Origin: Neoechinorhynchus agilis
Taxonomy: Eukaryota > Animalia > Acanthocephala
Assembly: GCA_051530055.1 (NCBI GenBank)
Contig: CM121342.1
Span: forward strand, 406,797-470,796
Direction of reading: 5' to 3'
DNA length: 64,000 bases
Shown: one piece after another, positions 32,289-62,318 of the stretch
Layout: every line of letters starts with the position of its first letter
How positions within the stretch are numbered: position 1 is the stretch's first letter
The notes under the pieces: generated by a model
The model's input: the letters and a program-made list of their open reading frames with translations, nothing else
Told to the model about the DNA's origin: nothing
The model's database searches: none
Made by a program: the position numbers and the translations under genes

Positions 32289-34721
32289 TTATTTGCAAAC
32301 GTTATTGCATTGATCCCCCGATTTCAGCAATCCCTTAGTGCTCACAATATACATTGGAACGGCACCGACGAATCCTCCTGCTTGGACGGTGACACCAAAC
32401 CAAAATAATTTTGTTGAATCCAGCTGACTAATGGTGTTTGCGATTTGAATTCGGATGAAGGATAGTGTGAGCTGTGCAGTGAACCACGAAACAAGCTAGG
32501 AATTCGTGTTAAAATTACACGATCGAATACTGCTCACATACCACAATGACAGATCCTTTTTGAGATCCATTCCAAAAAGGACATGGACTCATGATACTTG
32601 TAGCGACAATAACACTAACTGGCAAGCATCCAAATATAAATATTCCAACAAGCGGATAGACTTCAAGTTTAAGTTTAGGCCAAATCATCTTTGGCAGGAG
32701 AGAAATCGAACTTGCGATCGGGTCTAAAAAAATTATAACGTTTAAAAGGGATAAATATCGCTATTGTTTGCATTAATATTTTAAATATCGATTCTGGTCC
32801 ATTTCGTACTTTCGCATGTCTTCTTAACTACGTGGTCCACGAGTTAATTAACTTATCTAAGGTAATAATTGCGTAGATTTTTACGGCGATGGTCTATCAA
32901 ATTGTATTTTCTGAGGTTTTAGTTGTAAAGTAGCTGCACATTTGAAGGATGAGATAAGTTAGGTATTATGATATCATTTAAAAGCAAACCATTAAGCGAG
33001 AATTAATATTCTACCTTAGAGTACGATTCTCTAGGAGGTTCAAAATGCAAGTCAGATGAACGCCACGGTCAAAAATCAAAATTTTCGAGATATCAATAAA
33101 ACGAATGATTAGCACTTACTTAGTATGCTTCCTATATAATAAACGACGTGACCATAAGGAATCAAGGAATACGACGACAATGTAGGCAATATACCGAATA
33201 GAATGCAATTGATTGGAAGAGACAAGATTAGTAAGCGACGGCATTCGATTTCGTCTTTTGGTTTTGGAAGGAGAGCTTGCCTTGAATGTTCTTCGCTTGG
33301 AAAAGATTGTGCTTCTGTGAACCATCCATTGAACTCACGTCTTAAGAGGATGAATGCAGACAGAGAGATGCAGCAGATTATTGCAATGACAATAAAGAAT
33401 ACGCGAACACTAAATCTTGGCGGAATAATATCGACGACAAGACTGCCATTTAAGTTGTTTTCTTTATAAGTACAATTTATCTCCCCGATTCCTTGAACAA
33501 GAGCCAGAGATGGGGGCAGTAAGGTGCCGATCGATTCTCCAAGCAAAACAGCGTTCACGAATTTCGTTTTGTATTTCTTCATGTAATCCATATAGGAAAT
33601 ACTAGACGCTGTATCCACTAACGCAAGAACAAAAACTGTAACGAGAAGTACTACACTTTTGCTATTATGGATCTTTTGCCAGGCGAATGCAATTACGATG
33701 CAAGAGATCATTGAAACAATTATACTGGTGTATCGCGACGATTAATAATAAATTCAAGTAAGGTGCTACTTCTTAGCATATTTAAACGATTTAAACATGT
33801 ATATTTGACGAAAAAACGATGGTATTTAGCATAAGGCTTAACGAAATCATTAATGCATTTTATCAATTTTTGTCTTCAAACATTAGTTTTAATTAATAAG
33901 ATATCTTTCTATCGCCTAATTTTAGAAAGTTATTTTGTATCTTTTATGCAATCAAAATCTTTTTAAAAATGTCGGAGACGTTCTAAGAGACAAAATTTAC
34001 GAAAAACTGGAATAATAGAAATCATCGTCATGATCAGGTGCTAAATGTCACAAAAAGTGACAATAACCTTTTAATTGGAGCAACCAAAAGCATTGACTAA
34101 TTTGTGACCACAATGTTTACAGACTAAAAGTAATCGTAAGAGTAATCTTAATAGTTGTTACCGTATCCTTAAAACCTTTTGCTCATATATTTAAGCGAAC
34201 AAATTGATATAAGCATTGGAACTGATAAAATATAATGTTATTTTGCAATTGAGTGGTCTCAATTAAATCTCGAAATAAGAGGACGGAGATCCAAAACTGC
34301 ATGAAAATTTATGTCGGTTATCTTTGCCTCGTCAATGAATACTATTGTTTGAGCAAATAAATGTCCGAAACCGATAACTGTCAACAGATTAATCGGCGCT
34401 TTAAATCAATGGTACTTGGTTCATTTCGTCCTCCGAATCGTCGGTCTTTGCACTCCTTACAAAAGGAATTAATGACCACAATCTCATCAGCCATTGATAT
34501 CGGTGTCGCTGCTTAATGGTTTTATAAAGTACAATTGAAAGTGGAGCGATATTGCCTATTTGAATAAGTAAAGACATAATTGATGGTAACTTCCATCCTT
34601 CCGGTGCACTGTCAATAATAAGCGGTAGCTCGACAAATAGAGAATTTATATCAATCCATGTAGATGTACCGAGTAAACAAATAAGAAGGTAAACGATTCG
34701 AAGCACAAAAATTTCAAGCAT
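32289..34721 (-). CDS. SLC52A: SLC52-family riboflavin transporter (RFVT/GPR172-like), multi-exon
   Basis: WIDINSLFVELPLIIDSAPEGWKLPS; IQIGNIAPL; LALVDTASS; GESIGTLLP..LALVQG; PPRFSV; GILPTLSSYSLIPYG; SPCP; FWFGVTVQAGGFVGAVPMY; ends GDQCNNVCK*. Confidence 0.92.
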
Positions 34722-35130
34722 TAAGGTGCTCGTTTGTGTGCAGTTGGAGTTGTGTAATGAGTCGCTTTCTTGTTTTGAGAGGATCACGTTTCGTAACGTA
34801 ATATACGCAAATTCCGAACTTACAAGAGTGTATCTAAAAAGTTAGTGAGATGAAGCGTGTAGATTGCTCAATGTATTGATAATCAAATAAATTCCAATTA
34901 TATTCTTTATTTTTAAGTTTTACTGGCAAGCCGGTATTGTTTTTATCATCATTAAATTTTTAGTTTGTCCCTTCTTGTCCGACTTATTTTTAGGCATAAA
35001 GCCAAACCAATTACATCAGAGAAGTGATATAACCACATAGTCTCTAATGCACGGTTAAAAGTTTGAACATTCCTCCGGATCCTCAGAAACCTCCAGGAGG
35101 CGGGACTCATCAGTGAGTTTCCTCCCTTCA

Positions 35131-35385
35131 GCACCGTAACTATCTCTTCTTATCATGTAGATTGGATAGCCCTTTCCTTTTAGCATGCTCCACAGAAATT
35201 CAAGTTTCTCGCTGAGGGAGTCTTGGTTGGAGCAATAGTTGTAGCCCGGTCAAATAACGACTTAATCTTAGTTACTTTATATTTAATTGGTACCATTGTA
35301 ATGAAAGGGGCAATGCTATCCGGTATACCAATCTTCCTGCATCGTCAAATGTTTCGACGCGAGGACTTGGGTTATAGTCTTTATT
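35131..35385 (-). mobile_element. Penelope-like fragment (RT C-terminal part), duplicate of 50005-50259
   Basis: Near-identical to 50005-50259; KIKSLFDRATTIA..MLKGKGYP. Confidence 0.75.
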
Positions 35386-38300
35386 ATTTTTTATTTATTT
35401 ATTTAACACGGCCATACAACTAGTAAGATAACAATTAGGGTTTTTCGTTAGTCTAGAAGTTATCGTTGGTCCTTTGTCTGCTCTATTGGACTTCAGGTAT
35501 TAGGTCGATCTCAGACCACCTCGGAGGACCAAAAGATCAGATTAATCTTTTATCCTGGTAGTATTACTTTCTTGCCATTAACCTTTTTCTATCTTTATCC
35601 ATTAAGAAATTGCTTATTGTAAAAAAGTGTGTGCATCATTGAATTCTAATCGAATTGTGTGGGAGCATTGTGCGTTGAAGTTAGGGTTAGAAGTAGAGGG
35701 AAAGTAGAATACCTGTTCATTAGATATAAAGAACTTACCTTTATTAGAAAATGAAGAGAAGAATAAGATTTTTCCCAAAAATAAGCGTGAGAGGAAAGAA
35801 AAGAGGCTCATGAATAATTCAAATCAAGATATTTGGCTCTATTGAGAACATATTTGATTTTTAGAAAGGTATTATTAATCGAAGAATTAATTAAAAATCT
35901 AAATGTCTTGGAGGGGAAGTCGATTCCTAGAACCCTGGTAAATTTCTTAATGTTGGAGGAGTTAAAATTGTGGTATTTAATTAAATTATTGATTAAAACT
36001 TTCCTAGAAGAGAACGAGTTAGTGAGGGGGATAAAAAAGGTTTTATTGGCATTGATGACTAGATTAGCCAATTTCAACTCTGAGCTAAGGGTACTCAGAG
36101 CTGCTTGAATGTTGCATAAAAGAGAGGGACAAGACCTGGCCTTGCAGAAGACAAAGATATCGTCTGCATATATAAGAGGAAGGATACCCCTGGGTAGTTG
36201 CGATTTCTTAAAGATAAAATAAGGCCGATAAGGAAAAGAGTAGGGGGCAGTGGAGAGCCTTGGGGGACCCCCAAACGGGAAAAGAATTTGGTTTTTGAGG
36301 GATCCACCTCATAATAAAAGGACTTTGATTCAAGTATGTAATTACTTTTGTATATAAGATTCAGAGGAATTTTTAGCTCCTCAAGAGCTTTGTATAAAAA
36401 GGTTCTATCCAAAGCATCAAATGCTTTGTTCAGGTCAAGCTGAATAAGAATTTTTTGAACAAATTTAATATTGTTCATACAGTTAAGGGAATCAAGTAAA
36501 GTGTTAACGCCTTTACCCTTAATAAAACCATGGAAGTAAGAAGGAATAAGCTTCTTAGTTTCCCAAAACGTGTACAAAAGTCTATTTACGACTCTTTCTA
36601 TGCAGGAGATTATAGGATTCTGAATTGAAATTACTCTAATATGAGCCGGTTTAGAAATAATACCCTTGGTTTTTGGTAAAAAGACTTTCTTCACTATATT
36701 AATATGAAGAAGATCATCAAAATCTAGTTTTGTAAATTTTAATTTTAAAAAGAATAAAAATTTAATTTCTTCGCTGGTAGCAGCACGATTCCAATAGAAA
36801 ATTAATGTCTAAGTTCCAAGAGAATAATTTTTTATTAAAAATGGGAAGAGGAGGGCTGCGTAAGCCGAGAATGTATGCGCATTTAAAATTTCCTCAGTCA
36901 CCTTGGGATAAGAAATTGAACCAATCCAATTGGCAGCTTTTGCTCTCCAACAAGATGGGTTTTTGTTTAAAATGGTGGACCAAAAACCTTTGCCAAAAGG
37001 TTTGAGATTCACTAGGGTTTTCTTCTCCTGTTCAATCTGAAAGAAGAATTTTTCAGTGTAAAATTTCTTCATGAAGAGTTTTGTTATTAAAAAGATTGGC
37101 AATGATTGCTTTTTTATAAAAAATATTTGCAGTCCTACATACAGGAGGACGCTTAATGTAAGATTGAGTGATAAGATGTTTCTTTACAGAAAGTAAAATG
37201 AGGTCGTTAAAGATGCTAAGATGAGAGGGATAAAATAGTAACGGAAAGTTCTTTTTAAGAATTGCACTATCCAAAAAGGAGTGCCTGTTTGAACTAAAGT
37301 TATGAAAACATGGAAATTTAGGTAATAAAAAGTCTTTGGATTTAAAGAACGGTCTGAAGCCTGAGAAAAAATTAGTATTGAAGTCCCCAACTATAAAGTC
37401 GGGATCCCCAAATAATAAGAAGTTAATATACATTTTGGTAAAAGAGTTAACTTTCTTGGGTTGAATATGGAGATTGCATATCGTTAAATGGAGATTAGAG
37501 GGTGAGAAAGAGCCGTATAGAAGGTTTTTAATAGATACAATCTGTATCGCAAAGATCTCGTTCTTCTCCTGAAAGAGCAGCTTGGGGCATACTTATCCAG
37601 GATAAAAGTTGAAGTCCGCCGGAAAATCCTATACTAGATGAGGGTTTAGTAAAACGTGGAGATAAGAGAAAGCACTTATAGTTATTGGATGTAAAAATGG
37701 ATAATGGACCAGTTTCTTGAAAAAAGAGAAGATCCGTATAAGAAGAGTTTAAACAGTCAGAAAGGTGAGTGGGAAGTTTATATGCTCTAGAGGCATTATA
37801 TGTTATAAAAGAAAAATTCGAGTCAGGGGTCCAGAGAGGCTCTGCAATTATATTAAGATCTGTTACGTTTTGGATTTGATTCGTCCAATTCTCTAGAGTA
37901 TGGTGAGATTTGTCTTTTCGTAGAAGAGAAATTAAGCATTTCCCTAATTTTATTAAATGAGGTATTTTCTTGTAAGGATAGTCCATTTGCAAGAGAGAGC
38001 AAAGTCCGGATTTGTCAGTCTCTCAACAATCCACGCAAGCATGGATTTTAAGAGAATTCGTTTTCAAAGTTTAAACTCCTTTGGGATGAGGAGTGGGATA
38101 TAGTAATAGAATCAGTAGGGAAGGGTGAAATGCCCTCCAAGGTACAATGCTGCACGATTGTTTAGTGTTGTCAGCACTGTGAACTGGATGAGGATTGTAA
38201 GTAGCCCAGCCCATACAAACTTGCACTTCCTAGCAAAAGCTGGATGTCTCTTTCCGCAATTCGCGCAGAGAGGATTATCCTGTGCCTTACGGTCCCTTTT

Positions 38301-39115
38301 ATGGTGGGAGCCAGCTCAAAAGATGCATCTCGGCGAAGCCTTGCAGCCTGATTCCGTATGTCCCCATACAGAGCATTTTTGGCATATTGTCAGGTTGAAG
38401 TTGTAAATTGGCTCATGATACATGGAGAAGGTCACCCAGTGTGACGTGATAGCACGACCTGAGGAAGCCAATATGTCTGCAGTCTCCACCGGGGCAGAAC
38501 AAAGAAGTGCATATGCTGAAACCGAATTAGGACTGAATAGGTATTTTATCGGTTTCACACCTAATTCCTTCTCCACCAATCGAAAACCTTCTGCATCCAG
38601 TTCTTGAGGCGGATTAAACATTCTAATGGTCACCCTTCTTGAAAGATAAACAAACGTAATATCCAAGCCCGTCAACATTTTGAAAAATAAGTCCCTCCCT
38701 TCCGCATCGAAAAAGCAGAAGATAATATGAAACTTGGCAGCGAATAACCTCTTGATGTTGAAATGCCTAAGAGACGCTTTGCCGCCAGGGACCAAATAAC
38801 GTGAAAAATAGGTTCGTGTAAGCTCAGCAGGTGATCTGGTACCCAAAGCTTCCTTTGAGATCTTCACAACAAAATCATCCTTCTAGGTTGGACGTTTAAT
38901 AATGTTCGAAACTGGGGCACAATCATTCCTAACTTCACAATCACACGTGAGGGAAATAACTACGTCCGAAACCAGAGGAAAACTTGAACCGGAAAGTATA
39001 GTGGCCATATCTTCCAATATATTAACCTTTCAGAGAAGATATCGGCTGCTTACTTGGCTGTTTCTTTGATTTTATCAGAGCGTAAAAATAAACAAAAAAT
39101 AGCGCACGGTTTTTT
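35386..39115 (-). mobile_element. Full-length but frameshifted I-group-like LINE (ORF1 with CCHC knuckles, APE, RT), 9-bp TSD
   Basis: CQKCSVWGHTESGC and CANCGKRH knuckles; LFFQETG, IVGDFN (APE); QLDLNKAFD, GVPQGSPL (RT); A-rich 3' tail; TSD gtctttatt at 35377-35385 and 39116-39124; empty site at 50251-50259. Confidence 0.9.
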
Positions 39116-39124
39116 GTCTTTATT

Positions 39125-40152
39125 GTATATACATTGTTGTTCATAAATATACGTAGTGTGCGTTTTTAATCAATGCGTTTTTGTGTTTGTTGTCTATTTT
39201 TTTATTCTGTGTACTTTTAAACCTTTATTTTTGTTTATTCAAGCTTTCAGTTTCCATTTGTGTTTGCGAATGTGCAACATTCCCGAAGCTCCACTGCTGA
39301 TATCGCGCTAAAATTAATGCGGACGCCCGATCATATTTGCATAATAATTTTCCCATAAGTCCACAAAGATCAATGTACATGGTTCCTCTTTGTCTTGTTT
39401 CCACGAGGAATGGTCGAAATCGATATTGACGATTTGGCTGAGCTTATTCCGAAGAAGATAATCCAGACTTGATATATCATCAGTTCACGCGAAGGCGGGT
39501 GCAGATCTCAGTCTGTGCAAAAACTTTGAGATGTAGAGGCAGTTTTTAATCAAAAAACGGCTTCGTGAGACTTAAGCTCTGAACATCTCTCACATGGTAA
39601 AATCAGGGCGGCAAAGATATTTGCCACGTTCTTCGGAACATCCTCCTTGAAAACGCATGAACCTAGGAGATTGAGGTCGCAAATATTGATTCGTTTGATA
39701 CCCGGATTGACATTTTTGAATTGCTCGTGTACCCGCGAGCTTTCTGTTCTGTCCATGTTCAGGAGTAGCAATTCACACTTTGAACTGTTCAACTCGAAGC
39801 CTATCTTGGAGCTAATCTCGATGATGCGGCTAATATCACCCAGAACAGAGAGAGGGTCACCTCCCAGGATGCCGTCGTCCAGGTACCACGCGTTGAAGTT
39901 CGATTTTAGTGACCTCACCGATGGATTGATTGCAATGGAGAAGCCAATCAGACCGAGGGGCATGCTGCTTTTTCCATGCTGCCCAATCGATTCGGGTATC
40001 ATAATCTGAAATGAACCTGAGGAAATACCTGTAACGGGACGTCAGCGACACGCATAATGATAAATGTGATATCGATAGTGTGTTGTGGGGATGTGAACAT
40101 TGTGTGCGTGTTGTCTGCAAACAATAACCACCAATTCCCACAAGAACGGACA
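39125..40152 (-). mobile_element. CRE-clade retrotransposon remnant, duplicated at 50260-50997
   Basis: AWYLDDGILGG..SKIGFELNSSKCE, a CRE-type RT signature; long alignment with 50260-50997. Confidence 0.8.
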
Positions 40153-40379
40153 TAACACGACCTGATATTCCCAGATTATCTGTATGTTTATGAGGACCAA
40201 AGGTACATGGGTCTAATTTCTTAAACACAAAGGTCAATAAAACGTGTTATGATTATTATAAAACGTCGTTTTACCGTAAACTTACAAGGCGTTGTCAACT
40301 GTTATGAAAAATCGCGTTGGTAGTGTAAAAACGGTTTCTTAACCCCCAGACCCTTCCGATGATCCTGCGGGAGATCTGT

Positions 40380-42052
40380 GATGGATCAACGACCATTGCG
40401 AGAGCCGCTGCCTTCTGATTCTGTTTCGAACCTTACTACTCAGCTTCATAAATGGACATCTTCAAACAATTCTCAAGAAACTTATTTAGTTTATCCTACT
40501 AAGCGATGGCCTAGTACACCCAGCATAAAATCGAACCCCATAATGCCAAGGGATATCATCTTCAATCAAACAATCACCCCGTGGGCCAGTTCTTTCAAAA
40601 ATTCGGTGTTCTAAGAATATACTTGACCAATCTTAAGTGGCTAACAAATCTACAAAAACTCAACATTAAAGCTGCAGAGATTTCAAATATAAATCACGCT
40701 AACGATACTTGCATGGAATTAGAAGATTTGTGTATAGATGCAGAATAAAGCAATTCCGGATTTGTCAGTCGGATTATGGAGACGCAGATGTCCCTTATTG
40801 ACAATGATTCGGCCGATCTCATTAATGGGAAGATCAGCTCAAAAAAGCCCAGGTAATGAAGGGGAGTTTTAGAATTGTTCAATGGAACTGTGGTGGGGCG
40901 ACAAATCTCTACAAGATTACACGTTTTATCCCTGGAATTTCAATTTTTTTAATACAGGAAACCAAGATCATTTAGGCGAGCGCTCGACTATACAATATTG
41001 TACATCAACTCAACTCTCCAGAGTTCGACTGCTTCATCACTGCTCCTTTTGGACATTCCTCGCAAGGACTAATATCAATTTTTAATTTCTCACTTAATGC
41101 CACTTTGATTTCTTCTTTTGGCTCGAATGAACTATCTTACTCTACAAATTTTTATTTAACAAAAAATATTTCACTATTGCAAACCTGTACATTAAACCTG
41201 GTTTTGTGCATCGACCTTCCACTAAAAATATATTAAAGTTCCTCCTTTGGTCCAACATAGATTTTATTGTTGGGGATTTCGACGATATTTCGTTAAAATG
41301 TACCAAAGCAATGATCAACTTCGTCAAACCTTCCTATGAACTTTCTTTACCACAGTCTCCGTCCTTTCACATAATCTCCAAAAACACCCACTCTTTTTTA
41401 GACTTGTTTATCAGTAGGAAATGTCATAATCTCTTAATTCAGGTTGATCGTCAAGTTTCCCTTTTTGACCTGGCTGATCACAATCTTTTAATTTGGTTCT
41501 GTGGACTAACGACACTTTACGAAGAATCTCTCATCTGCCCCCTGGACATCGCTCTTTTTAAATGCGTCGTTCAAAATATTTTTTGCTTCCAAATACAACT
41601 CCCTTTTAACCTCCTAACGTAAATAGCTTAATCAACAAAACGGTTAGTTTATTTCTATATCATCCAATAATAATTTTTTCTAGACCCTACGAAAGCCGTT
41701 CCTTGCGCTTTATTGGAAGGCAATTATATATAACTAAGCAAGCCGGAGACCCCATTCTCTCCAAGCTGTTTTCCAATCATTTTTATGCTGATCGATGTCG
41801 ACAGCATTACAGAAGAGAAGGTGCGGTATTGGACGCTCTTAAACCTTACTCTTCGAAATGGTGGTCAACTTTTTCAAAAAAGAAGTTCATCAAATAGAAA
41901 TCAAAAGTTGTGAGCTGGTTAAAATCTGCTAATATAGGGTCTATTCTTAACGTTATTTTCGAATACCACTCTGTTGGTCGGGTAAAAGATAGACCCTCGT
42001 TAGTATTTCGCAGACTAATCACTGGTCGTCGAGACCTTAATGTTGATAACAT
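40380..42052 (+). mobile_element. Decayed I-group-like LINE (APE region), 3' truncated by CR1
   Basis: LIQETK, IDFIVGDFD, SFHIISKNTHSFLD; same motifs as the 20-23 kb and 35-39 kb LINEs. Confidence 0.7.
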
Positions 42053-42054
42053 TT

Positions 42055-45000
42055 TGAATGTCTGGCCACATCAAAGCAGCTAACGTCATCAGGGATCGTC
42101 AACGCCATCAAGGATAGTCAACGTCATCTCGCTCGTCAGCATCCTCTCTCGCGTGAACGCCCTCCAAAGTCGAAAACAATTATCGATACAATTAAATCTT
42201 CATCGTTGCGCTCACCTTCATGGCTGGTAAAAAGTCCCGTAACCCAGCCTCTAAGAAGATCACCTGCTCGTGCCAAGGGTGCTCGATAACAACCCTCATC
42301 GCCCCAACGCACATCCCAGAGTCTTGCCCGTTCTTTATCTGTGGGTTCTGTTGCGCCAAGCTGCTGATCAAATTGGCACCAGATAGAATACCGTTTGGAA
42401 TGTCTTTTGGAGTTGTCAACAGGGCACTTTCGACCGCGATCGACGCTAACCTCGAAACATACCCTTCTACCATGCCTTTGAACATCACAACAGAAGCCAT
42501 TTCACAGATTTCTCCCGATCTGATGTCCAACAACGGCCCATCACCAGAATCATTCCACCACTCCGATCTCTTTCCTCCCGTTTCACCCGTCACAACACTT
42601 CCCACTCAACTGAGTATATCCCCAAGACACAACCAAACAATTGTCAAGGATCCCTTACCAGCTCCCTGCAGGCCGTTAATTTCACATCTAATTAATGACA
42701 ACGAGCGTGACCTGTTTCCGTAATAGGCCAACCAACTATCTTGTGACAACCCAAACATGCCATGCACACCTGGAAATGATAAATCGTCTCTGAACCCTCG
42801 ACCTAACTCAATCCCGATTATCAAACCTCCAGTTCAGACTCATATTACCTCCCTCGCATCCACCCTCCCCGCAGCTCCTTCTTATCCCGCTCGTCGACTT
42901 CCAACCTTTGTTTTCCATCCCTTATCAGAAAATCGTCACACCTCAGACATACTAGTCACCACAGAAACCCGGCTAAGTGACTCAAACAAAGACACCGCAG
43001 CCATACCTAACTTCACTCACTTTCACTCTGTCAGAGGCCCAGCCCAAAAAATTTCGGTCGGCCTTGAAAATCTACTTACACCCTAGATGAACAGGCAACC
43101 ACAACGTCACCTGACTTGACATCCATCTCCCCCCTCGAACCCATTTCCTTGCTGAGCATCCCACCTAAACAGCCGTTCCCTACAATCATATACACCAATA
43201 TTCGTAGCATCCTACCAAAAATCGACGAGCTGTCCATACCAAAGCTGACATTCTCGTCATTACGGAAACCTGGCTCTCCCAATTTAATAAGGACACCGCC
43301 ATCATCCCCGGATTCTCCTCATTTCACCTAACTAGAGATGATCGTTCTGGGGGAGGCGTCTCTATTTACTTGAAGTCATCCTTACCATACACCATCTCCA
43401 TCCCTCACTATTTTATATAAGAACATCTCAAAAGGGTTCACCTTCAACTCTCTTTTTCTCTTCATAACGGCAGCCGTGAAATGAACGTCGCCGGTGTTTA
43501 TCGTCCCCCTGCCTCAACTCCCGCCGCAACATCTGAACAAATCGATACCTTAATTAATGACAAGCTATCGTTAAATTCTCAACACTTCATGATTCTAGGA
43601 GCCCTACCGCTCCGATTCCCAACTGGGCCATTCGCATTATCATTTCCTTGATCTTTGAGCCTCTAGCTCATATCATCAATTCTAGCTTTGAAACGAGGAT
43701 TTTTGCAGATTGCCTGAAGACTGCTCGCGTCATTCCTATCCCTAAGGCGGGGAAACCCGTTTCTCCGACTTCCTTTCGCCCTATATCTCTACTCTTGCCG
43801 TTTTCTAAAAATTGTTGAAAAATGTTTCAGAACTCGCATCCTCCCCATCTTTTTACAAAATATTTCGTCTAACCGATTCGGCTTCCGACCAGGATTCTGT
43901 TATACCGATGCCCTCTTGTGCATTTACGATTCAATTCTGCGCAATCTTGACCAAGAACCGTCTTTCGTTTGTCGCCTCATCCAGGTGGATCTTGCCAAGG
44001 CCTTTGACTCTGTAGGTCACGATCTTCTCGTTAAGGCCTGCGAGAAATTTGGCTTCTTACCCTGGCAAATAAGCTGGCTCACTTCTTTCCTCGCAAACCG
44101 GTCGCAATATTTTCAATGCGGAAATACCCACTCGACGACGCTTCCCATACATGGCGGTGTGTCACAAGGAGCAGTACTATCGCCTTTACTTTTCGATATC
44201 TTCCTCAACGACCTTACACCCCTCTCAACGTCCGCTAAATATTTCCTTTATGCGGACGGCCTAACCATCATAACCCATGCTCCTCCATCACCCTCACTCA
44301 GCCTCACGTCCGCAGAGATTTAAAATCTTAAAGATTTTTGCACCACCCATAAACTCTCAATTAATTTCTCCAAATCTTATGAACTTATTCCGTCGCTTCG
44401 AAAACCTAGGACTGGTATTCCACCGCTCCCTCTCGATATCCAACGAATCACATCGCTTCGCATTCTGGGCCTATTCTTCCAACATAACCTCAAATGGGAC
44501 ATCCACATTAATGGCGTCGTAGCAAAAGCCACTGCTAAATTGTATTTTATCAAGCGCTTGCGTTTCCTCGGAGTCAGCCCACGCGATCTAGCACGTTTCT
44601 ATTGGTACGTTGTGGTCCCTGCAATCTCATATGCATACCCAACCTTTTGCAATTAATCGACCCCTGTTAGATCTGATATTTCCAAAATGATAAAACTTTT
44701 GAAAATTGCCAAATCTAAAGTCAAACCGGTCTGTAATCTTGGATTGAGTGTTAAGCACTTCCAATCCATTTGGAAAACTTGGGCAATCTCTAGCCTGGTA
44801 TTTTTTTTCTAGAGGTCGCCCTCCAGAACAGAAACCACAGTTCATTAACGGCTTTTTGAAACATCTAGACTCGTTACCTCTTACCTGGACTTGAGAGTTA
44901 AGAGACTTCTCCCTTAAAAGGCTTGAGAAATGGACGAATCAATAGGAATCTAACATCTTCTTAGTATATATCCGAGCTATACAAAACAACTAAGATCTTT

Positions 45001-45060
45001 TTAGACGACTGGTGGAACGAGGCTTCTTTTAAGAAACATTTCAATTCAGTAAACTATGTT
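42055..45060 (+). mobile_element. CR1-clade LINE, decayed
   Basis: ORF1 with Cys cluster (CSCQGC..FICGFCC); IIYTNIRSILPKIDEL, TETRL (APE); QVDLAKAFDSVGH, GVSQGAVLSPLLF..FLND, LYADG (RT). Confidence 0.85.
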
Positions 45061-45103
45061 TTATCCTGGATTATGATCACCCGAACTCCAACAAAAAGTA
45101 ATG

Positions 45104-46550
45104 CTACAAATCTGTCTTTTTCTCAGCTTCCATCCTCCTATATTCCTTCTTAACAAATGCAGACGTAGTGACAGCCAACAAAAGACAGACACAGAGGAAA
45201 ATGTTCGAGAGTACCGACTTGTGGTTTTCGAGAATCGCTGCATGAGAATAGGTAAGCACTATTCCGAAGATCTGCGCGGACCAGTTTAGAATTCCACTGG
45301 AAATGTCCTCGTTGGTTGGATAAGTGATTTCAGCGGCGAGTTCGAATCCGATTGCTAAGAATCCAGTCATCGTAAACCCCAACAGAGCCGAAATGAAGTA
45401 ACCAATAAGCACGTTGAGATGAAGAGTTGCCGTAAATATGATCATAAAGATGAGACTGCATGCGCAGGAAATGATAGAAACCACTCGGTACTTTTTGGAC
45501 CAACTTAATATCATACCAGCACATATGCTTCCAACAAGTCCACTGATTACGATAATTACACCGACGATACCAGCGGCATTTTTGTTGTTAGGGTGGTTTT
45601 CCTCGTAGTATTTATGGACATTAACCGAAAAGGCATAATACACGCCAACGACGAGTCCATAGGTAAAGAAAAGCACAATAAAGCTTTGCATAAGTAGCGG
45701 GCATGCATGACGAACTTAAAGAACTTCGTTTTAAACCGTTTGTCAGACAACCCTTTAGGTATTTGAATGTTTCGAGAACGCTCATTTTGTTCTCGGCGCG
45801 TAGTACTTCGGCTTGGCTAACTGGCTTTTTGGGTTTATCAGGGAAGAATAAAACAATCAACAAGCAATCTATGCAGGCGACAACACACAGGGGCACAGCT
45901 ACTCCGTACAGCATCGTATTTTTAAGTCCATTAAATACTTCATCGCTAATATGGGTACTATTGTATATTCCTTCAATTCTGTTGACTAAAACACTAGGGA
46001 TGATGAACCCAAAAGCAATTCCGAGTTCATTGGCAAAGACGCCTATCGATGCAACGATCGATGCTACTTCTTGACGAAACCAAAGTGCAGCTAAATGGGA
46101 TGGCTGACCAAGAGTGAACGTCTCTGCTAATCCGGATATAACTTGACCAAACATTAATGCTCCAAATGACAGATAATGTTGGGCTATGCATTTTATTACC
46201 GTCCCGGTTGCATTTAAACACGATCCAATGACAATGCTGGTTCTCAGACCCTTTCCTTCCAGTAGAAAATGACATGGAATAATGAAAACAAAGTACAAAA
46301 ACATGAAAACCGTGGCTGTTGTGTCAATTACGAATTGTCGGCCATTGACAGGAAGAGTAGAGTTGTAAAGTATTTTGACTTGCTCACTTACGACTGTGAA
46401 TTGTATCCATTGAAAAGCGTTGGAACCAGTTAAAACAAGGAAGAGAAAAAGGACGAGAAACCGGCGAGGTTCCTCGCCTATTGTTGCTTCAATACACAAG
46501 TCTTGCTTTGTGTTTTCGTTCAGTTTCCGCGGATTAGAGTGGAGCTCCAT
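45104..46550 (-). CDS. FLVCR: FLVCR/SLC49-family MFS transporter (heme/choline/ethanolamine family)
   Basis: ATG 46550 (MELHSNP; the ORF track starts at an upstream TTG); RRFLVLFLF..SNAFQWIQF; GQPSHLAALWF..SIGVFANELGIAFGF; GFELAAEITYP..SSGILN..AQIFGI. One short intron or frameshift near 45690-45740 is unresolved. Confidence 0.92.
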
Positions 46551-46835
46551 GACCTTTTGATTACATCTACCCTTCAATGTGAAATTATACTTGACAAAAA
46601 ATAAAAACGAACCTAGAACTATCCCATGTACGGTTTGATATTTGCTCCCATGCTTTCACTTGAGATACGTCTTTGACTGATGCGACATTTAACATGCGAC
46701 TAAGGTTGTAAAACGATAACGATATTTAAATACCATAGCTTTAAAAATTTGATAATTCACATTTAAACGCGAAATAAAATGGTGAATGATTTCTGTTTAG
46801 TTAAAGATAGAATCCATGAGTATGTGGCGGTGGGG

Positions 46836-47024
46836 AGCACAAAAATTTCAAGCATTAAGGTGCTCGTTTGTGTTCAGTTGGAGTTGTGTAATGAGTCGCT
46901 CTTTTGTTTTAACGTAATATACGCAAATTCCGAACTTACAAGAGTGTATCTAAAAAGTTAGTGAGATGAAGCGTGTAGATTGCTAAATGTATTGATAATC
47001 AAATAAATTCCAATTATATTCTTT
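46836..47024 (-). pseudogene. Duplicated SLC52 promoter plus first 7 codons
   Basis: Near-identical to 34702-34908 (one ~18-bp indel); includes ATG CTT GAA ATT TTT GTG. Confidence 0.9.
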
Positions 47025-48008
47025 GCCAAGAAAATAAATTCTATTAGCCGTTTATAAAATTACAAGCATCAATAATGCTCTGTCCGTTTAAACGTGTAAC
47101 ATATCTTGGCTGTTGGCTGTTTCAGGTGCCCAAGAAGCATAAAAACGTCATTTTCAAAGTCGTCAAAAAAAATCGAAATTATTCTCGCATTCATTACGTC
47201 TTCGAAATGCCTATATATCGCAAGCCACCGAAAATAGGCTGCTCTGTTCAACCGATGGAAAGTAAAAAAGTCAACATCAGTTTAAAATTGCCTGTTGAAA
47301 AGGCAGTGGTGCTAGTCCGTAGGATAACGCTAATGTTCGTGGTTTAGATGATAAACCTTGATAATGTCGGAATTATCCAACGTGAAATATCGGAAATAAA
47401 TTAGTGAATTTAAATCCGGGGTGGCAAAGCTGCCAAAAGAACCCAAGACATCAAGAACAAAAAAAACCATGGCTAATTACCAATGGATAGAAAACTTTCC
47501 ATCGTAACCTCAAGGTTCTCGTGCTTAAGGGACCAGAACAAATTTTAAAACTGCTGAAGTTTCAAAGATTAATGCATATAGGGTAGGGAGGTTGGGCATA
47601 TAACAAGAAAGCACTTAAGGGAGTCTAGGTTGCTTTGGCGATCTCAGGCCTTGTCTTTTCGAGAGGGCTCTCGATAAGCCGCCCTCCCAATTCACAATAT
47701 ATGAGCACTGGACGCCTCAAAATAAGGAAATGGTTGCATTGAGGCTAACACTAATAAATATTTATTAAGGCGATTTTTACTTGCCCAAGTCAGTATTGTT
47801 CATTGGTAGCCCTAAAGATTAACTTGCTTGGGATAAAATGGCGATTCTGGATATCTTCAATTAATTTTATTGCCGGGCTGTAGATCAGAATTACTGCCAA
47901 AGAAAAAATGAAATTTTAGTTGAAGCATCTACATTCGAAGCGGCGTAAACTCAAATAAAATTGTATTTGATACGTAGGTTTTAAGTAGATAATTGTTATT
48001 GTTTTAAC

Positions 48009-49021
48009 ATGCGTCCAAATCAACTGGTCGTGAAAATCGTACTTAATTTGCTTGCTATATTAACCTCAACTTGCGCTGAGCTGGGAAGAAACTGTTTTGA
48101 TGAACAGTACGATACAATCTATATAGCAAGTAGACCGAAAACCGACACCTCGGTGATCGTACCTTTCCGAATATCAATTCCACAAAACATGCTAACATTT
48201 TTCTTGCTTGTCAGTGGAAACATGACCGACAGTGTTGGTCAATTGATTTCTTATGATGGCTTTCTATTCGATAATCCAGTTCTGGTTTGTGCAATCATTC
48301 CCTTTACAATCAAATCGGTCCTATTTAGCTCAACCGGACACTAGACGATGATTTTGGTTCAACATTAAAAAAAGAGAATAACACGGAATTCAGTGGACGC
48401 GTATTTTTCAACAACACTGATTCGCCAAATGGGTGTCTGTTCATCGGCCACATCGACGAGGATACTGGTGAACTCTCATGGCAACTGACAGCGACGGTTC
48501 TTGGCGAGCCGAATGCTCTACAATATGAACCGTGCGCTTTTTGGACAAAAATGGAACGAGATGTTGCAAGTTGTGTAAATGAGTCGAATTCCCTAGTGAA
48601 TTTAGCAGTTGAATTTGGAATGGACTCGTGCTGTTCGGAATGCGAGTCAATGAACTTTAATCACATCTCAAACATTTCAATTGCCAAAACGATTTTCGAG
48701 GGCAAAGCAAAGTCAACAAAACGTGGGTGGCTTATGCTCGGAAAATTGCGCAGAGTCGCAAGCAACCGTAGAAAGGACGTTCAGATGTTAAAGCGATTGC
48801 GCTTTGCGAAACCTGTGCCAGTGGACAACGAGTTTGTTCGTTATTTACGAGCTTCGAATCACAAATGCTGTAAATTTACAATTGATCCAAATCGCTGTAA
48901 TGTAGAAACTGAAGTACGCCGAATTTTTGAAACTTATGAGACAATTTGGAGATGTTTATCATTTTTACAAGAAAGTGATCGCAATTTGATGTACTCGCGA
49001 TTGACTGTTCGTCTTTACTGA
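48009..49021 (+). CDS. Orphan secreted Cys-containing protein, 2 exons (48009-48284, 48329-49021), ~322 aa
   Basis: Signal-peptide-like MRPNQLVVKIVLNLLAILTSTCA; 44-nt phase-0 GT-AG intron joins two open frames; CCSEC and CCKF..C motifs; several N-glycosylation sequons. Confidence 0.7.
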
Positions 49022-49559
49022 TATAATGGTGGCGAGAAAAAAAGACCTTTACATATATGTTTTTATCAGAAATGTATGCTAAAACGTTTATTATAGTTAA
49101 TCTAATTTCGATCCATTCCGATTTCAGCAAAATTCTGATTTATCGCGTTGTCTGCTAAAATGTGCTTTATGGTTATTACAATGCCATAAAAAGGTGCAAA
49201 CGAATGATTGTAAATTAATAGTTAAGAATACATTACAACCATCTGCAAATGTTGAAGGCCGGTAATGTACAACAAAAGAGAGAATCTTGACAATACAAAA
49301 GTCTTGGGGAAGAGCTACCATTTAATAAGTTCATTACAAAGACTTTTTGTCTTGGGTTATTATCTTCGACGAGAGCCACACACAATTGCTCAGTGTTTTA
49401 ACAAGTTAATTTAAAAATAAATGAGAAAACTGAACGCTTGCAAAGTTCAAGAAGCAGCGAATACGGCGATGCTTATAATAATGTTTTAAGATTGAATTAT
49501 TCATATAGTTTGTTTTTGGCGGGAATGGATCAATATTCACTGCCCTAAGATTGAGCCTA

Positions 49560-50259
49560 AAGTCCGCCTTGTTCCCTTCAACCGTTTTCACTTGGCGGAT
49601 TAATATGGTCTCCAAAATTACACGATCCCATTTTTTTAACTGCGTGCCAAAATGGTCGTGTTGTCAATGTTCATGACGTGGCCTTGTTGTGCGAAATGGT
49701 TGAGTATTGCGGAACTGGCATCGGTACCTATCCTCAGAGCATATTTGTGCCCATTGGTTGTTTTTTCAAAATTGCGTGTTTGGCCCACATACGACTTTTC
49801 ACATTCGGTGCAAGGAATTTTGTACACCACTCCATTGCCTTGACGTTTTTCACGTCCCTTCACCATGGAACTCAGTTGCTTAGCTTTCTTGGTGCAGATT
49901 TGATCAGGCTGCTAATTATAGTGAAGAATTCCTCGTCGACGAATTGTGCATCTATGGAGGCCTTTTGTTTTGACTTCTGGCGCATAGTTTTCGTTGCGTA
50001 GAAGGCACCGTAACTATCTCTTCTTATCATGTAGATTGGATAGCCCTTTCCTTTTAGCATGCTCCACAGAAATTCAAGTTTCTCGCTGAGGGAGTCTTGG
50101 TTGGAGCAATAGTTGTAGCCCGGTCAAATAACGACTTAATCTTAGTTACTTTATATTTAATTGGTACCATTGTAATGAAAGGGGCAATGCTATCCGGTAT
50201 ACCAATCTTCCTGCATCGTCAAATGTTTCGACGCGAGGACTTGGGTTATAGTCTTTATT
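49560..50259 (-). mobile_element. Penelope-like element, decayed (RT C-terminus plus GIY-YIG endonuclease)
   Basis: GNGVVYKIPCTECEKSYVGQTR..GHK..HFAQQGHVMNIDNTTILA; KGYPIYMI upstream. Confidence 0.88.
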
Positions 50260-50997
50260 GTATATACATTGTTGTTCATAAATATACGTAGTGTGCGTTT
50301 TTATGTTTGTTGTCTATTTTTTTATTCTGTGTACTTTTAAACCTTTATTTTTGTTTATTCAAGCTTTCAGTTTCCATTTGTGTTTGCGAATGTGCAACAT
50401 TCCCGAAGCTCCACTGCTGATATCGCGCTAAAATTCATGCGGACGCCCGATCTTCCTCTTTGTCTTGTTTCCACGAGGAATGGTCGAAATCGATATTGAC
50501 GATTTGGCTGAGCTTATTCCGACGAAGATCATCCACGCTCGATATATCATCAGTGCACGCGAAGGCAGGTGCAGATCTCGGCCTGTGCAAAAACTTTGAG
50601 ATGTAGAGGCAGTTTTTAATCAAAAAACGGCTTCGTGAGACTTAAGCTCTGAACATCTCTCACATGGTAAAATCAGGGCGGCAAAGATATTTGCTACGTC
50701 CTTCGGAACATTCTCCTTGAAAACGCAAGTTCAATTTTAGTGACGTCAGTAATGGATTGATTGCAATGGAGAAGTCAATCATACCGAGGGGCATGCTGCT
50801 TTTTCCATGCTGCTTTTTCCATGCTGCCCAATCGTTTCGGGTATCATAATCTGAAATGAATCTGATAAAATTCCTGTAGCAGGACGTCAGCGACACGCAT
50901 AATGATAAATGTGATATCGATAGTGTGTTGTGGGAATGTGAACATTGAGTGCGCGTTGGCTGCAAACAGTAACAACCAATTCCAACAAGAACGGACA
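50260..50997 (-). mobile_element. CRE-clade remnant (duplicate of 39125-40152 with internal deletions)
   Basis: Direct sequence similarity to the first copy, ending at caagaacggaca. Confidence 0.8.
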
Positions 50998-52603
50998 CAA
51001 TTGTATTGCATTGTATGCAACGGTACTTTCCTACGTTGCACCGTAGGTATAAGCCCGTCAAATAGAATTAGACTCCGCAAGGGATCTAAAATACACGACT
51101 GCAGTCCTGTTATGCGGGCAATTCGCGTCTCTTAAAATCAGGTCATCGTATGTACGGCAGTTCCCTTTGCCTTTACGATACAATGTCGTTGGCTTCCAGA
51201 AAAGGAATTGTTGCACGACCTGTGGGCAAGATGCCTCGGACCGAATTATATTGCCCGTGAACTGCAGTCGTCTGCGGTGCAAATATTCACTGGGCGGTTG
51301 TACTCCGGCTCTAATACAGTGCTTTGTTGGTCACTTTATCTGACCATCTGACCTTGAACGCCGCACGTAAGAGAGATGAATGATTTTGGCCCAACTGCCT
51401 CGTCGCCGTTGGTGACAGTGTCCAGGTCTCTGCATTGTAGTAGAGAATGCTCTCAATTAGAGCCCTGAACAGCTGCGAACGGAGTTCATCTGGCAAAGAC
51501 TCGCTGTCAAACAGTGGTTTAAGTTGCCCCATTGCTCTCCAAGCTATAGCTCTCCATCGGCTGACATCCGCACTCACCTCAGGAACGACAGCTCCCAGAT
51601 AGACATACCGCTCTATCTGTTTTAATTGCTCAACGCCATTCGGCCCTTCGCCAGAGACTGTATGCGCGACATGCGGAATCGTCACGAATTCCGTCTTTTT
51701 CGAGTTGATGGTCAGACCAATCATACTCGCCCTCTCGCACAGTCTATTTAGCATGCGTTGAGCTCCTTCGACTGTCGAGGACATCAATACGATGTCGTCG
51801 GCATATGCCATGTAGGAGGCGCGTATCTCAGGATACTTGCGACCTCTTTTCCTCAACAGAAGAAATCCATCTTCATCATTCGGTGGTGCCCATCCCATTA
51901 CCCAATCAAGCACCAAGATGAATAGAAAAGGAGCCAATGTGTCGCCCTGCAGAACACATGAAGTGGTGGAAAAGTATTCTGTCAAATCGTCAGCTGTCTT
52001 TACGGCGGACCTTGTGTTTTTATATAATGCCATAACGGATGTGACAATGATCGGCGGCACTCCATACTCCTTTGAGATACCGCCAATCATCGTTCGATTT
52101 ACCGAATCGAAAGCTCGACGGAAATCAACGAATACCAGCGTCACATCCGTTTGATGAATTCGTGCCTCCTCGAGGATCCTCTTCAAAGCCAATATGTGCT
52201 CTGTGTTGCCTCGACCATTCCTGAAGCCGTTTTGTTCAATTCTTAGAAACGGTTCGAGGATTGTCTGAATTCGGCGTCTCATAATGCCGCTGAAAAAGCA
52301 TTTCTTGGGGATCATTGTTAAATGCGCCGTTTGCCAGATTTGAAGTACTCAGCCACCATTCATTATGCCATTCATTATCGGTATGATTTTTCTGGCAATA
52401 GATTCAAACCTCAGTACCTCTGCGATTGTCCCATTTGGGCCTGATGCAAGTCCCGCACGCATCATTTTCGCCGCAGCGATCACTTCCTTCACGGAAATCG
52501 GTCCAGTGAAGTATGCCTCAGTGCTTGGGACGATTGTGCTTTTTGCGAGTGCAGGACTCACTTCGAAAGACGATAATGGCGAATTGAGAATTTCCGCAAA
52601 ATA
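50998..52603 (-). mobile_element. 5'-truncated RTE-clade LINE
   Basis: EQNGFRNGR, FVDFRRAFDSVNR, VLQGDTLAPFLF, AYADD; 3' tail of short CAAT(A/G) repeats at ~50998-51020. Confidence 0.9.
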
Positions 52604-52945
52604 ACACAAGTCTTGCTTTGTGTTTTCGTTCAGTTTCCGCGGATTAGAGTGGAGCTCCATGACCTTTTGATTACATCTACCCTTCAATGTGAAATTATAC
52701 TTGACAAAAAATAAAAACGAACCTAGAACTATCCCATGTACGGTTTGATATTTGCTCCCATGCTTTCACTTGAGATACGTCTTTGACTGATGCGACATTT
52801 AACATGCGACTAAGGTTGTAAAACGATAACGATATTTAAATACCATAGCTTTAAAAATTTGATAATTCACATTTAAACGCGAAATAAAATGGTGAATGAT
52901 TTCTGTTTAGTTAAAGATAAAATCCATGAGTATGTGGCGACGGGG
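52604..52945 (-). pseudogene. Duplicated FLVCR promoter plus first 19 codons, fused in frame to RTE ORF2
   Basis: 342-bp direct repeat of 46494-46835 (offset 6110); ATG at 52660. Confidence 0.92.
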
Positions 52946-53104
52946 AAAAATATATTAAAGAATGACTTTAATTGAAATGTTTCGTTCAATCACACTGTAC
53001 TTCTTCAGTCAATTATTGCTTGTAAGTTTCAAAAATTCCAGTGTGATTGGACGAAATATTTCAATTAAAGTCATTCTTTGATATAATTTTTCCCCACCGC
53101 CACA
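52933..53104. mobile_element. 172-bp palindromic MITE-like element
   Basis: tgtggcgacggggaaaaa..aaagaatgactttaattgaaat..tcaatcacactg is inverted against cagtgtgattgg..atttcaattaaagtcattcttt..tttttccccaccgccaca; no TSD seen. Confidence 0.75.
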
Positions 53105-55272: not shown

Positions 55273-55457
<185 letters not shown>

Positions 55458-59445: not shown

Positions 59446-59489
59446 CAGATTTATTATCGAACGGAAAATGGGTGTTTTATTTGTTTATT

Positions 59490-62274: not shown

Positions 62275-62318
62275 AATAAACAAATAAAACACCCGTTTTC
62301 CGTTCGATAATAAATCTG

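Follow-up and report, generated by a model that had tools for sequence, protein, structure and literature searches.

When considering the gene order at this locus, a simple question arises: did an FLVCR-like transporter gene and a neighbouring orphan gene reach their present positions through tandem duplication of a multi-gene block, followed by loss of one gene from each copy? The locus lies in a 64-kb window (the whole stretch of DNA analysed here) of the nuclear genome assembly of the thorny-headed worm Neoechinorhynchus agilis (Acanthocephala), CM121342.1. The assembly material was a pool of worms, not one individual, and the pipeline was hybrid (ONT, sparse HiFi and Illumina reads; MaSuRCA/Flye, purge_dups, instaGRAAL). 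Duplicate blocks were called by self-BLAST of the window, and gene and TE domains were assigned by Pfam profile matches on ORFs (e.g. PF06237, RVT_1). The features are collected in Table 1.

Table 1. Features of the locus (positions in the window; primes mark copy 2)
Feature	Position	Strand	Description
Pair A, A'	34702-34908 and 46836-47024		4 mismatches in 189 aligned bases and one 18-bp indel
Pair B, B'	35131-35385 and 50005-50259		255/255 identical
Pair C, C'	39116-40152 and 50251-50997		three pieces, 87-96% identity
Pair D, D'	46491-46836 and 52600-52946		3 mismatches, all in the final 27 bp
SLC52 riboflavin-transporter gene	32292-34721	-	Pfam PF06237 matches, profile positions 4-420 of 429
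Block A, copy 1	34702-34908		SLC52 ATG and 6 more codons, 5'UTR, proximal upstream DNA
Copy-1-only segment, 222 bp	34909-35130		occupies the place of 2980 bp in copy 2
Block B, copy 1	35131-35385		with block C, one old retroelement remnant
Copy-1 LINE	35386-39115	-	decayed, full-length-sized (3.7 kb); RVT_1 E=1.7e-15 on ORF 36095-36694
Block C, copy 1	39116-40152	-	remnant of a reverse-transcriptase-bearing element
Copy-1-only TE-rich DNA	40153-45103		LINE fragments listed separately
Endonuclease-like LINE fragment	41206-41622	+	ORF
LINE with RT domain	~42100-44900	+	RVT_1 E=2.9e-16 on 43916-44323
FLVCR-like MFS transporter ACOME3_004697	45104-46550	-	474 aa, intact; 100% match to P0001
Block D, copy 1	46491-46836		first 19 FLVCR codons and 286 bp upstream; the palindrome left arm starts with its final 14 bp
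Novel tandem junction	46835-46836		...GGCGGTGGGGA / GCACAAAAATTTC...; 1 nt microhomology
Block A', copy 2	46836-47024		orphaned copy of SLC52 upstream region, 5'UTR and ATG; faces FLVCR
Copy-2-only segment, 2980 bp	47025-50004	+	carries orphan ACOME3_004698
Orphan gene ACOME3_004698	48009-49021	+	322 aa; 44-nt intron 48285-48328
Blocks B' and C', copy 2	50005-50997		contiguous; empty site of copy-1 LINE
5'-truncated RTE-clade LINE	50998-52603	-	~aa 505-1036 of ~1036-aa relatives; RVT_1 E=2e-21
Block D', copy 2	52600-52946		FLVCR upstream region and 19 codons, in-frame fusion to RTE ORF
Imperfect palindrome	52933-53104		172 bp, arms 88% complementary

Paired blocks and their junction

Self-BLAST of the window recovered four block pairs, A to D, collinear and on the same strand, just where a sequence-only reading had placed them. 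With E-values of 1e-68 to 1e-177, the matches are far beyond chance, and none of the blocks has a further match elsewhere in the 64-kb window. The homology of D and D' is ungapped from 46494/52604 onward; that of C and C' is possibly 3 nt longer than listed, to 40155/51000. Within block C, stretches of 15, 50 and 239 bp are limited to copy 1 and a 14-bp duplication is limited to copy 2. The sequence missing from the 239-bp gap of C' is RT-like and coding and, because it persists in copy 1, the gap represents a deletion in copy 2.

Position 46836 is both the last nucleotide of block D and the first of A'; the copies are therefore directly adjacent, sharing 1 nt. There are no Ns at 46835/46836 or between the copies, and the junctions, including 46835/46836, contain no DpnII/HinfI (scaffolding) sites. 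Beyond 34702 on the left and 52946 on the right, the flanking DNA does not resemble the opposite copy. The left breakpoint falls in codon 7 of SLC52, and the right one (52946/52947) lies upstream of FLVCR, 14 bp into the left arm of the palindrome. Whatever the proposed tandem unit predicts that can be checked in the sequence alone was found, including the single novel junction.

Genes and retroelements in the two copies

The SLC52 gene, with at least four exons (34721-~34500, 33741-33112, 32760-32542, 32495-32292), an intron of 46 nt at 32496-32541 and its ATG at 34719-34721, looks apparently intact and functional. Since the unit begins 20 nt inside the SLC52 coding sequence and takes in just these 20 nt (34702-34721), the earlier claim that each of the three genes survives exactly once is real for two genes only, FLVCR and the orphan; SLC52 itself was never duplicated. 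In A', the copied ATG opens a chimeric ORF of 30 codons (46855-46766; MLEIFVL+PTATYSW...).

The FLVCR gene of copy 1 has a 22-nt intron (GT..AG, 45715-45736), and its product matches the structures of human FLVCR2/FLVCR1, a haem/choline transporter, over the full length (E=9e-75). Its dN/dS relative to a paralog is 0.18 and 0.14 on either side of the intron, and to judge by the sequence the gene looks functional. In copy 1, and likewise in the distant paralog at 2.14 Mb, exon 1 runs unbroken across the D boundary; hence D' is a derived truncation, and the body of FLVCR was lost from copy 2, as had been proposed. No remnant of this body was detected in copy 2. The RTE-clade LINE (1.6 kb) exactly occupies the gap that matches 6.3 kb of copy 1, FLVCR body included, and the fusion ORF from D' into the LINE (52660-52349) extends for 103 aa up to the first stop. 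In tblastn searches with P0005, P0007 and P0013, this element showed 42-44% identity over ~480 aa (E ~1e-127). Its ORF ends at ~51061, followed by a 3'UTR of ~60 nt and a complete 3' end; its lesions are an in-frame stop (52349-52351), a frameshift at ~51312 and one 19-aa deletion. It is bordered by a 6-bp direct repeat, ACACAA (50995-51000 and 52604-52609).

The other LINE, in copy 1, has an A-rich tail at its low-coordinate end and an ORF2 in at least four pieces. It is flanked by a perfect 9-bp TSD, GTCTTTATT (35377-35385 and 39116-39124), and its empty site is kept in copy 2 at 50251-50259; the LINE gain suggested earlier is borne out by both features, and, as far as the sequence goes, the element is shown to have entered copy 1 after the duplication. 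In block C, ORF 39550-40002 has a weak RVT_1 match (E=0.014). As side observations, the LINE at ~42100-44900 hosts, on its opposite strand, an annotated gene model of 231 aa, and the copy-1-only region 40153-45103 shows weak DNA similarity to a LINE at 55876-56617.

The orphan gene encodes a cysteine-rich product with an N-terminal hydrophobic, signal-like segment. It has no Pfam match and no homolog at E<=10 among 5.8e9 proteins, and exhaustive HMMER searching returned a spurious repeat match as its single outcome. No remnant of the orphan was detected in copy 1, where its place is taken by a 222-bp segment that, at word size 7, matches nothing else in the window. Nothing is common to the 222-bp segment and the 2980-bp one, so that either direction of change is formally conceivable, and the one observation suggesting a loss from copy 1 is that there is no second copy or homolog anywhere.

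History of the locus and competing explanations

Taken together, these data make it probable that the locus underwent a real, fairly young, non-homology-mediated tandem segmental duplication that was partly resolved by complementary loss. The ancestral order would have been SLC52(-), orphan(+), the old retroelement remnant (B-C), FLVCR(-), the palindrome and an EF-hand gene(-). A unit of ~10 kb, with its left end in SLC52 codon 7 and its right end just within the 172-bp palindrome, 286 bp before the start codon of FLVCR, would have been copied head to tail, and the 1 nt of microhomology points to end joining or to template switching during replication. In copy 1, a LINE then inserted by target-primed reverse transcription, leaving the 9-bp TSD, and the orphan segment of ~3 kb may have been swapped for a filler of 222 bp. 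Copy 2 lost the body of FLVCR along with the ~5 kb of the unit that lay upstream of this body, and the 5'-truncated RTE element stands in their place; the outcome is plain, and the mechanism was most likely a LINE-insertion-associated deletion. Several features sit less comfortably with this history: both losses are replacements, not clean deletions; the RTE element bears a 6-bp direct repeat, while classical LINE-mediated deletions are without TSD; and the assembly is a hybrid ONT assembly of pooled worms.

The divergence between the copies calls for an additional step. It is a mosaic (0-0.2% vs 7%): the left part of block C (to 39452) is ~99.6% identical, while its right part (39453-40152) has diverged by ~7%, with mismatches at 0/255 positions in B, 1/263 in left C and 0/319 in most of D against 33/461 in right C (1/518 for B plus left C vs 33/461, Fisher p = 1.6e-10). 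A simple duplication of a single age does not predict such uneven divergence, and, therefore, gene conversion is invoked as an extra assumption: it would have homogenised B, left C and most of D, leaving right C at ~7%. In sum, the sequence-only reading is supported in part: the sequence bears out its tandem duplication, LINE gain and FLVCR loss, SLC52 was not duplicated, and the orphan loss is probable only by inference.

An assembly artefact, namely a false 'heterotype' duplication in which two alleles segregating in the pool, one without the orphan and one without FLVCR, were placed in series, is an unlikely source of this pattern. It would suit the pooled worms and the pipeline described above, and the copies, like divergent haplotypes, differ by large TE insertions/deletions, false duplications being common at such haplotypes (PMC9516828); here too, adjacent diverged copies of a locus are found in a primary assembly of heterozygous (pooled) material. 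However, false duplications of this kind are typically separated by gaps or unsupported sequence (Ko et al. 2022, PMC9516828), whereas the present copies meet without Ns at a clean microhomology junction, located at a palindrome and away from the DpnII/HinfI sites where instaGRAAL cuts. Furthermore, an allelic graph would have no edge from D to A', so that a chimeric join would be needed, placed exactly so as to leave the flanks unrepeated; a breakpoint within a palindrome is to be expected of a biological rearrangement; and the same two replacement events would still be required, plus an assembly error.

It also seems improbable that the tandem duplication was real, of an ancestral unit that never included the orphan, and FLVCR alone was lost, the 2980 bp having entered copy 2 later and displaced 222 bp. 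The dissimilarity of the two segments formally allows either direction, and the orphan, being without a homolog in other organisms, could be young. Yet neither the annotated proteome of N. agilis nor any other source yielded a paralog or donor copy of the orphan, the 2980-bp segment was found to carry none of the marks of an insertion (TIRs, TSDs, a LINE tail), the orphan is not a retrocopy because it has a 44-nt intron, and, mechanistically, one deletion with filler is a simpler event than the insertion of 3 kb with a gene at exactly the place of a 222-bp deletion.

It is very hard to believe that there was no large duplication at all, with B-C representing two independent retroelement insertions, and A' and D' small duplications or LINE captures (e.g. 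an FLVCR 5' mRNA-RTE chimera). In favour of this reading, B-C is a retroelement remnant, right C is diverged like unrelated TE copies, and D' adjoins the RTE 5' end with orientation and reading frame preserved, as template-switch chimeras do. Yet independent events would not be expected to end the D/D' homology at the very nucleotide where A/A' starts, nor old independent TE copies to be as identical as B and left C. The two copies of B-C have identical ends, agree in order and orientation, and have no further match in the window. In D', the 286 bp that precede the ATG extend to the palindrome and do not form a defined mRNA 5' end with a TSD.

Comparison with known systems

In L1-mediated deletions, a truncated insert lies between kilobase-scale deletion breakpoints, as where an L1 of 2.1 kb accompanies a deletion of 3.9 kb, typically without a TSD (Rodriguez-Martin et al., 10.1101/179705). 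Here, similarly, the space between kilobase-scale deletion breakpoints is exactly taken up by a non-LTR element that is truncated at its 5' end and intact at its 3' end; it differs in being of the RTE clade, without a poly(A) tail and flanked by ACACAA. A two-step history of this site (deletion and then insertion, or the reverse) is also conceivable.

Palindromes and hairpins are associated with rearrangement breakpoints. In the N. agilis locus, one breakpoint falls inside an inverted repeat that folds as a DNA hairpin at -60 kcal/mol (z = -15), which might possibly have triggered the duplication; this applies to one of the two breakpoints and, with palindromes covering ~1.6% of the window, would occur by chance in ~3% of cases, so that the association is suggestive only.

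The overall scheme is that of tandem duplication-random loss (TDRL), a model of gene-order change classically applied to animal mitochondrial genomes and also to local transposition of nuclear genes. The likeness consists in a head-to-tail multi-gene block with alternate losses, here turning SLC52-orphan-FLVCR into SLC52-FLVCR-orphan. Unlike the classical case, the locus is nuclear, the losses are LINE and filler replacements rather than gradual decay, and the remnants A', B'C' and D' are still visible, the ancestral order being deduced, not observed. The net effect would be that FLVCR and the orphan have exchanged places and, as divergently oriented neighbours, now lie on either side of the novel junction. 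Of its native upstream DNA the intact FLVCR retains only 286 bp, beyond which lies a copy of the SLC52 promoter/5' end on the same strand, while the FLVCR promoter copy with the full native upstream region now heads the in-frame fusion of 19 FLVCR codons to the RTE ORF. The type of event, tandem duplication followed by random loss, is already known; the locus would be an ordinary, albeit unusually readable, case of gene-order change.

Collinear blocks and the novel junction

Four pairs of matching blocks, A to D in the left copy (copy 1) and A' to D' in the right one (copy 2), were recovered by self-BLAST where the sequence-only reading had placed them, with order and strand conserved between the copies; the blocks have no further matches elsewhere in the 64-kb window. 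In a base-level alignment, D ends where A' starts, at 46836, the joint being formed by GGCGGTGGGGA followed directly by GCACAAAAATTTC; the microhomology there amounts to 1 nt. At the outer edges homology ends abruptly, and no similarity between the copies was detected below 34702 or above 52946. The abutting of D on A' and the unique outer flanks are what a head-to-tail duplication leaves behind when it creates a single novel junction; together with the collinear direct copies, they characterise a tandem segmental duplication. We are fairly confident that the duplication is real.

Features of the SLC52-FLVCR locus (window positions; adding 406,796 gives the coordinate on record CM121342.1)
Feature	Position (copy 1 for blocks)	Position in copy 2	Strand or orientation	Divergence or character
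Block A	34702-34908	46836-47024	direct	4 mismatches in 189 aligned bases
Block B	35131-35385	50005-50259	direct	0 in 255
Block C	39116-40152	50251-50997	direct	left C 1 in 263; right C 33 in 461
Block D	46491-46836	52600-52946	direct	0 in 319, then 3 in 27 beside the junction
SLC52 riboflavin transporter	32292-34721		minus	Pfam PF06237, profile positions 4-420 of 429; four exons
FLVCR homolog (ACOME3_004697)	45104-46550		minus	full-length match to human FLVCR2/FLVCR1 structures, E = 9e-75
Orphan gene (ACOME3_004698)	48009-49021		plus	322 aa; 44-nt intron
EF-hand gene	54421-55005		minus	intronless
Copy-1 LINE	35386-39115			3730 bp, between B and C
RTE element		50998-52603	minus	5'-truncated LINE
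Palindrome	52933-53104			172 bp, imperfect

The main competing explanation, a false heterotype duplication produced by haplotype stacking in the assembly, appears to us unlikely, even though the setting is prone to it: the assembly was built from a pooled sample with MaSuRCA/Flye, followed by purge_dups and then instaGRAAL (PMC12690905). False duplications are betrayed by half read depth, by single-copy haplotype k-mers, and by a gap or a stretch of unsupported sequence that separates the copies (PMC9516828). Here, the window contains zero N, so that no assembly gap separates the copies, and the joint 46835/46836 is clean and lies outside any DpnII or HinfI site. An exact look-up of nine ORFs of the window, including junction-spanning sequence, in public and Logan assemblies found only the annotated EF-hand protein.

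The right breakpoint (52946/52947) falls 14 bp inside the left arm of the palindrome, the arms of which are 88% complementary (DNA fold of -60 kcal/mol, z = -15). Since palindromes make up about 1.6% of the window, a breakpoint inside one has a chance expectation of roughly 3%; this position is suggestive, and only suggestive, of a biological break or a template switch. The end of D as it stands in copy 1 agrees with the complement of the right arm, and hence two of the three mismatches between D and D' can be polarised as changes in D'. Further palindromic or hairpin-forming stretches, mutually dissimilar at the DNA level, are found at 7412-7524, 17401-17853, 21231-21351, 26362-26466 and 53598-53675.

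Insertions, losses and the divergence mosaic

A perfect 9-bp direct repeat, GTCTTTATT (TSD), brackets the sequence that separates B from C in copy 1, copy 2 holds the empty site at 50251-50259, and the inserted segment shows an RVT_1 match (RT domain) and an A-rich 3' tail, TAAATAAATAAATAAAAAAT, on the element strand. These features demonstrate that copy 1 gained a LINE, as had been proposed from the sequence, and identify it as a non-LTR retrotransposon insertion by TPRT. B and C together constitute one old retroelement remnant, contiguous in copy 2 and carrying a weak RVT_1 signal; no RT signal was found upstream of this element, beyond 40152, in copy 1, a result that adds no proof of a truncation in copy 2. 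The 239-bp gap in C' coincides with RT-like coding sequence still present in copy 1 and therefore represents a deletion on the copy-2 side. The annotated 231-aa gene model at 42108-43164 (minus strand), antisense within a LINE and devoid of Pfam support, is probably spurious.

The interval between C and D comprises 6338 bp of TE-rich DNA and FLVCR body in copy 1, as against about 1.6 kb in copy 2, where it is filled by a truncated LINE of the RTE clade. In copy 1, as well as in the distant paralog, FLVCR exon 1 runs uninterrupted through the D boundary; hence D' is a truncated derivative and copy 2 has lost the gene body, as the sequence-only reading had it, D' being the remnant that proves the loss. 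No remnant of the FLVCR body was detected in copy 2 by word-7 BLASTN or tblastn. The RTE element is homologous to about residues 505-1036 of ~1036-aa elements, its ORF ending at about 51061 and being followed by a short 3'UTR; thus it is 5'-truncated, has a complete 3' end and lies between the deletion breakpoints, a configuration expected of a LINE-mediated deletion. A deletion of this kind would also be expected to lack a TSD; here the hexamer ACACAA is present on both flanks (50995-51000 and 52604-52609), and the corresponding points of copy 1 read ACATAA (40150-40155) and ACACAA (46494-46499), each hexamer being contiguous with copy-1 homology. The flanks may represent either a TSD left by two successive events or a resemblance between the sequences at two sites of cleavage; for the motif itself, a TSD, microhomology and endonuclease site preference are alternative accounts.

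The FLVCR codons of D' continue in frame into the RTE ORF, with 103 codons to the first stop. An origin of the FLVCR 5' end from the LINE, which the apparent extension of the tblastn RTE homology 90 bp into D' seemed to indicate, was rejected: the shuffle test gave p = 0.08, the unrelated N-terminus of the paralog obtains a still better score, and the homology of the paralog runs through the boundary.

The simple duplication model does not predict the mosaic of divergence between the blocks. Right C (39453-40152 versus 50523-50997) forms a patch of ~7% divergence within duplicate blocks that are otherwise 99-100% identical, a difference with Fisher p = 1.6e-10 when right C is compared with B plus left C. 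Gene conversion is the likely cause of this patch, either as interlocus conversion between the tandem copies, with tracts bounded by heterologies, or as ectopic conversion, with a different copy of this retroelement acting on right C, both of which are possible. CpG content does not account for the patch: right C has 34 CpG in 700 bp, an absolute number above that of the other blocks, but its observed/expected ratio of 0.94 is not above theirs, and the CpG sites, touched by about a third of the right-C mismatches, do not explain a 30-fold difference.

The remaining part of the window contains several further elements. A Penelope-like retroelement (59446-62318) encodes a 611-aa ORF (59554-61389, minus strand) with RT and a GIY-YIG-type endonuclease motif, and carries an inverted repeat of its own 3' part (997 bp, 99.6% identity). 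Three retroelement ORFs at 24643-26272 (minus strand) are read as a putative LTR-type Pol remnant, directly adjoined by a LINE (26369-28869, minus strand) that is RT- and endonuclease-like and is matched by RTE proteins in tblastn.

The three genes

The A-B interval measures 222 bp in copy 1 versus 2980 bp, including the orphan gene, in copy 2. These segments share no similarity, the 222 bp having no match in the window (word-7 BLASTN), and no remnant of the orphan was detected in copy 1 by word-7 BLASTN and tblastn. Around the 2980-bp segment neither TIRs nor TSDs were found. Given this lack of transposon hallmarks, the presence of an intron in the gene and the lack of a donor copy elsewhere, loss of the orphan from copy 1 with insertion of a filler would be the more economical reading. 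Thus, of the proposed reciprocal loss, the FLVCR side is documented by D', whereas the orphan side, with no remnant, is one that we infer. The orphan product has no match at E<=10 among 5.8e9 proteins and no Pfam match, and its single-sequence AlphaFold model is uninformative (pLDDT 30); a FAZ1 repeat protein, the only match in an exhaustive HMMER search over 1.84e9 representatives, is spurious.

The SLC52 gene appears intact. Its ATG is located at 34719-34721, so that block A carries 20 nt of its coding sequence along with the 5'UTR and the promoter; SLC52, therefore, was never duplicated as a gene, and the earlier claim that each of three genes survives once describes a real outcome for the other two alone. 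The orphaned SLC52 start in A' begins a 30-codon chimeric ORF directed towards FLVCR. The gene is probably missing from the deposited annotation, because a query with ~300 of its residues, concatenated with the C-block ORF and both LINE RTs, matched no N. agilis protein; the matches of this query were swamped by RTE relatives and included no N. agilis TE copies. Just downstream of SLC52 there is a degenerate tandem array (29955-31227; period ~260 bp, repeats ~75% identical), and a (TTA)65 microsatellite (55260-55456) adjoins the EF-hand gene.

The FLVCR-like ORF is identical (100%) to 'hypothetical protein ACOME3_004697 [Neoechinorhynchus agilis]'; its residues 23-470 align to FLVCR2 (8vzn), and it also matches the MFS fold (PF07690). 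Block D contains codons 1-19 and 286 bp of upstream DNA. A paralog with 75% identity, ACOME3_005081, is also located on this 16.4-Mb chromosome. The FLVCR-like gene is functional as judged from sequence by evolutionary criteria, dN/dS being 0.18 and 0.14 on either side of the 22-nt intron, and the dS of about 0.65-0.69 between the paralogs makes the tandem event much younger than their split. The paralog locus (L002) has neither SLC52 nor the orphan as a neighbour and is uninformative on the ancestral order; protein searches with the FLVCR-like ORF and the orphan returned N. agilis proteins only.

The FLVCR-like gene has its GT..AG intron at 45715-45736, and the paralog has a 23-nt intron at the same position (about 11150-11175 of L002). 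Neither 22 nor 23 is divisible by 3, and purifying selection acts on the coding sequence on each side, so the segment must be spliced out. An intron of 22 nt is extremely short for an animal; other introns at the locus are 44 and 46 nt long. The annotated paralog model (P0002) has instead a 107-nt intron, omitting about 28 conserved codons.

Gene order and its possible consequences

If real, the duplication changed the gene order from SLC52-orphan-FLVCR to SLC52-FLVCR-orphan. FLVCR and the orphan, now adjacent and divergent, have the novel junction in the 1.46 kb between their ATGs, and of its native upstream DNA the intact FLVCR retains 286 bp, beyond which lies a copied SLC52 promoter. A real duplication would make the locus a clean, base-pair-resolved nuclear case in which gene order and promoter neighbourhoods were altered by duplication and complementary loss, with the steps still legible: joining through microhomology at a palindrome, insertion of a LINE that left a TSD, and a further LINE occupying a deletion.

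A nuclear tandem duplication with random loss caught before its scars eroded, perhaps still polymorphic in the sampled worms, and with two nutrient transporters functionally re-wired, is the most far-reaching possibility, and we consider it a long shot. Were re-wiring true, the sole intact FLVCR would stand behind the same-strand SLC52 promoter and 5' end copy, preceded by a new upstream ORF of 30 codons; a predicted FLVCR-RTE fusion transcript would be driven by the native FLVCR promoter in its full extent; and FLVCR would form a divergent gene pair with a lineage-specific, predicted secreted orphan. N. agilis is a gutless parasite that feeds through its body surface, and altered regulation of riboflavin and haem/choline transporters could, in such an animal, matter biologically. 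For users of this pooled-sample assembly, the A' and D' fragments and the FLVCR-RTE fusion ORF carry a warning, as they could be mis-annotated, and the SLC52-FLVCR locus lends itself well to a test for haplotype stacking.

With a real duplication, the pattern at the locus would be that of tandem duplication and random loss, events of a kind already known; the locus has no earlier description and is not surprising. The arrangement of the RTE element in copy 2 is like that of L1-mediated deletions, in which a truncated insert lies between kilobase-scale deletion breakpoints (10.1101/179705).
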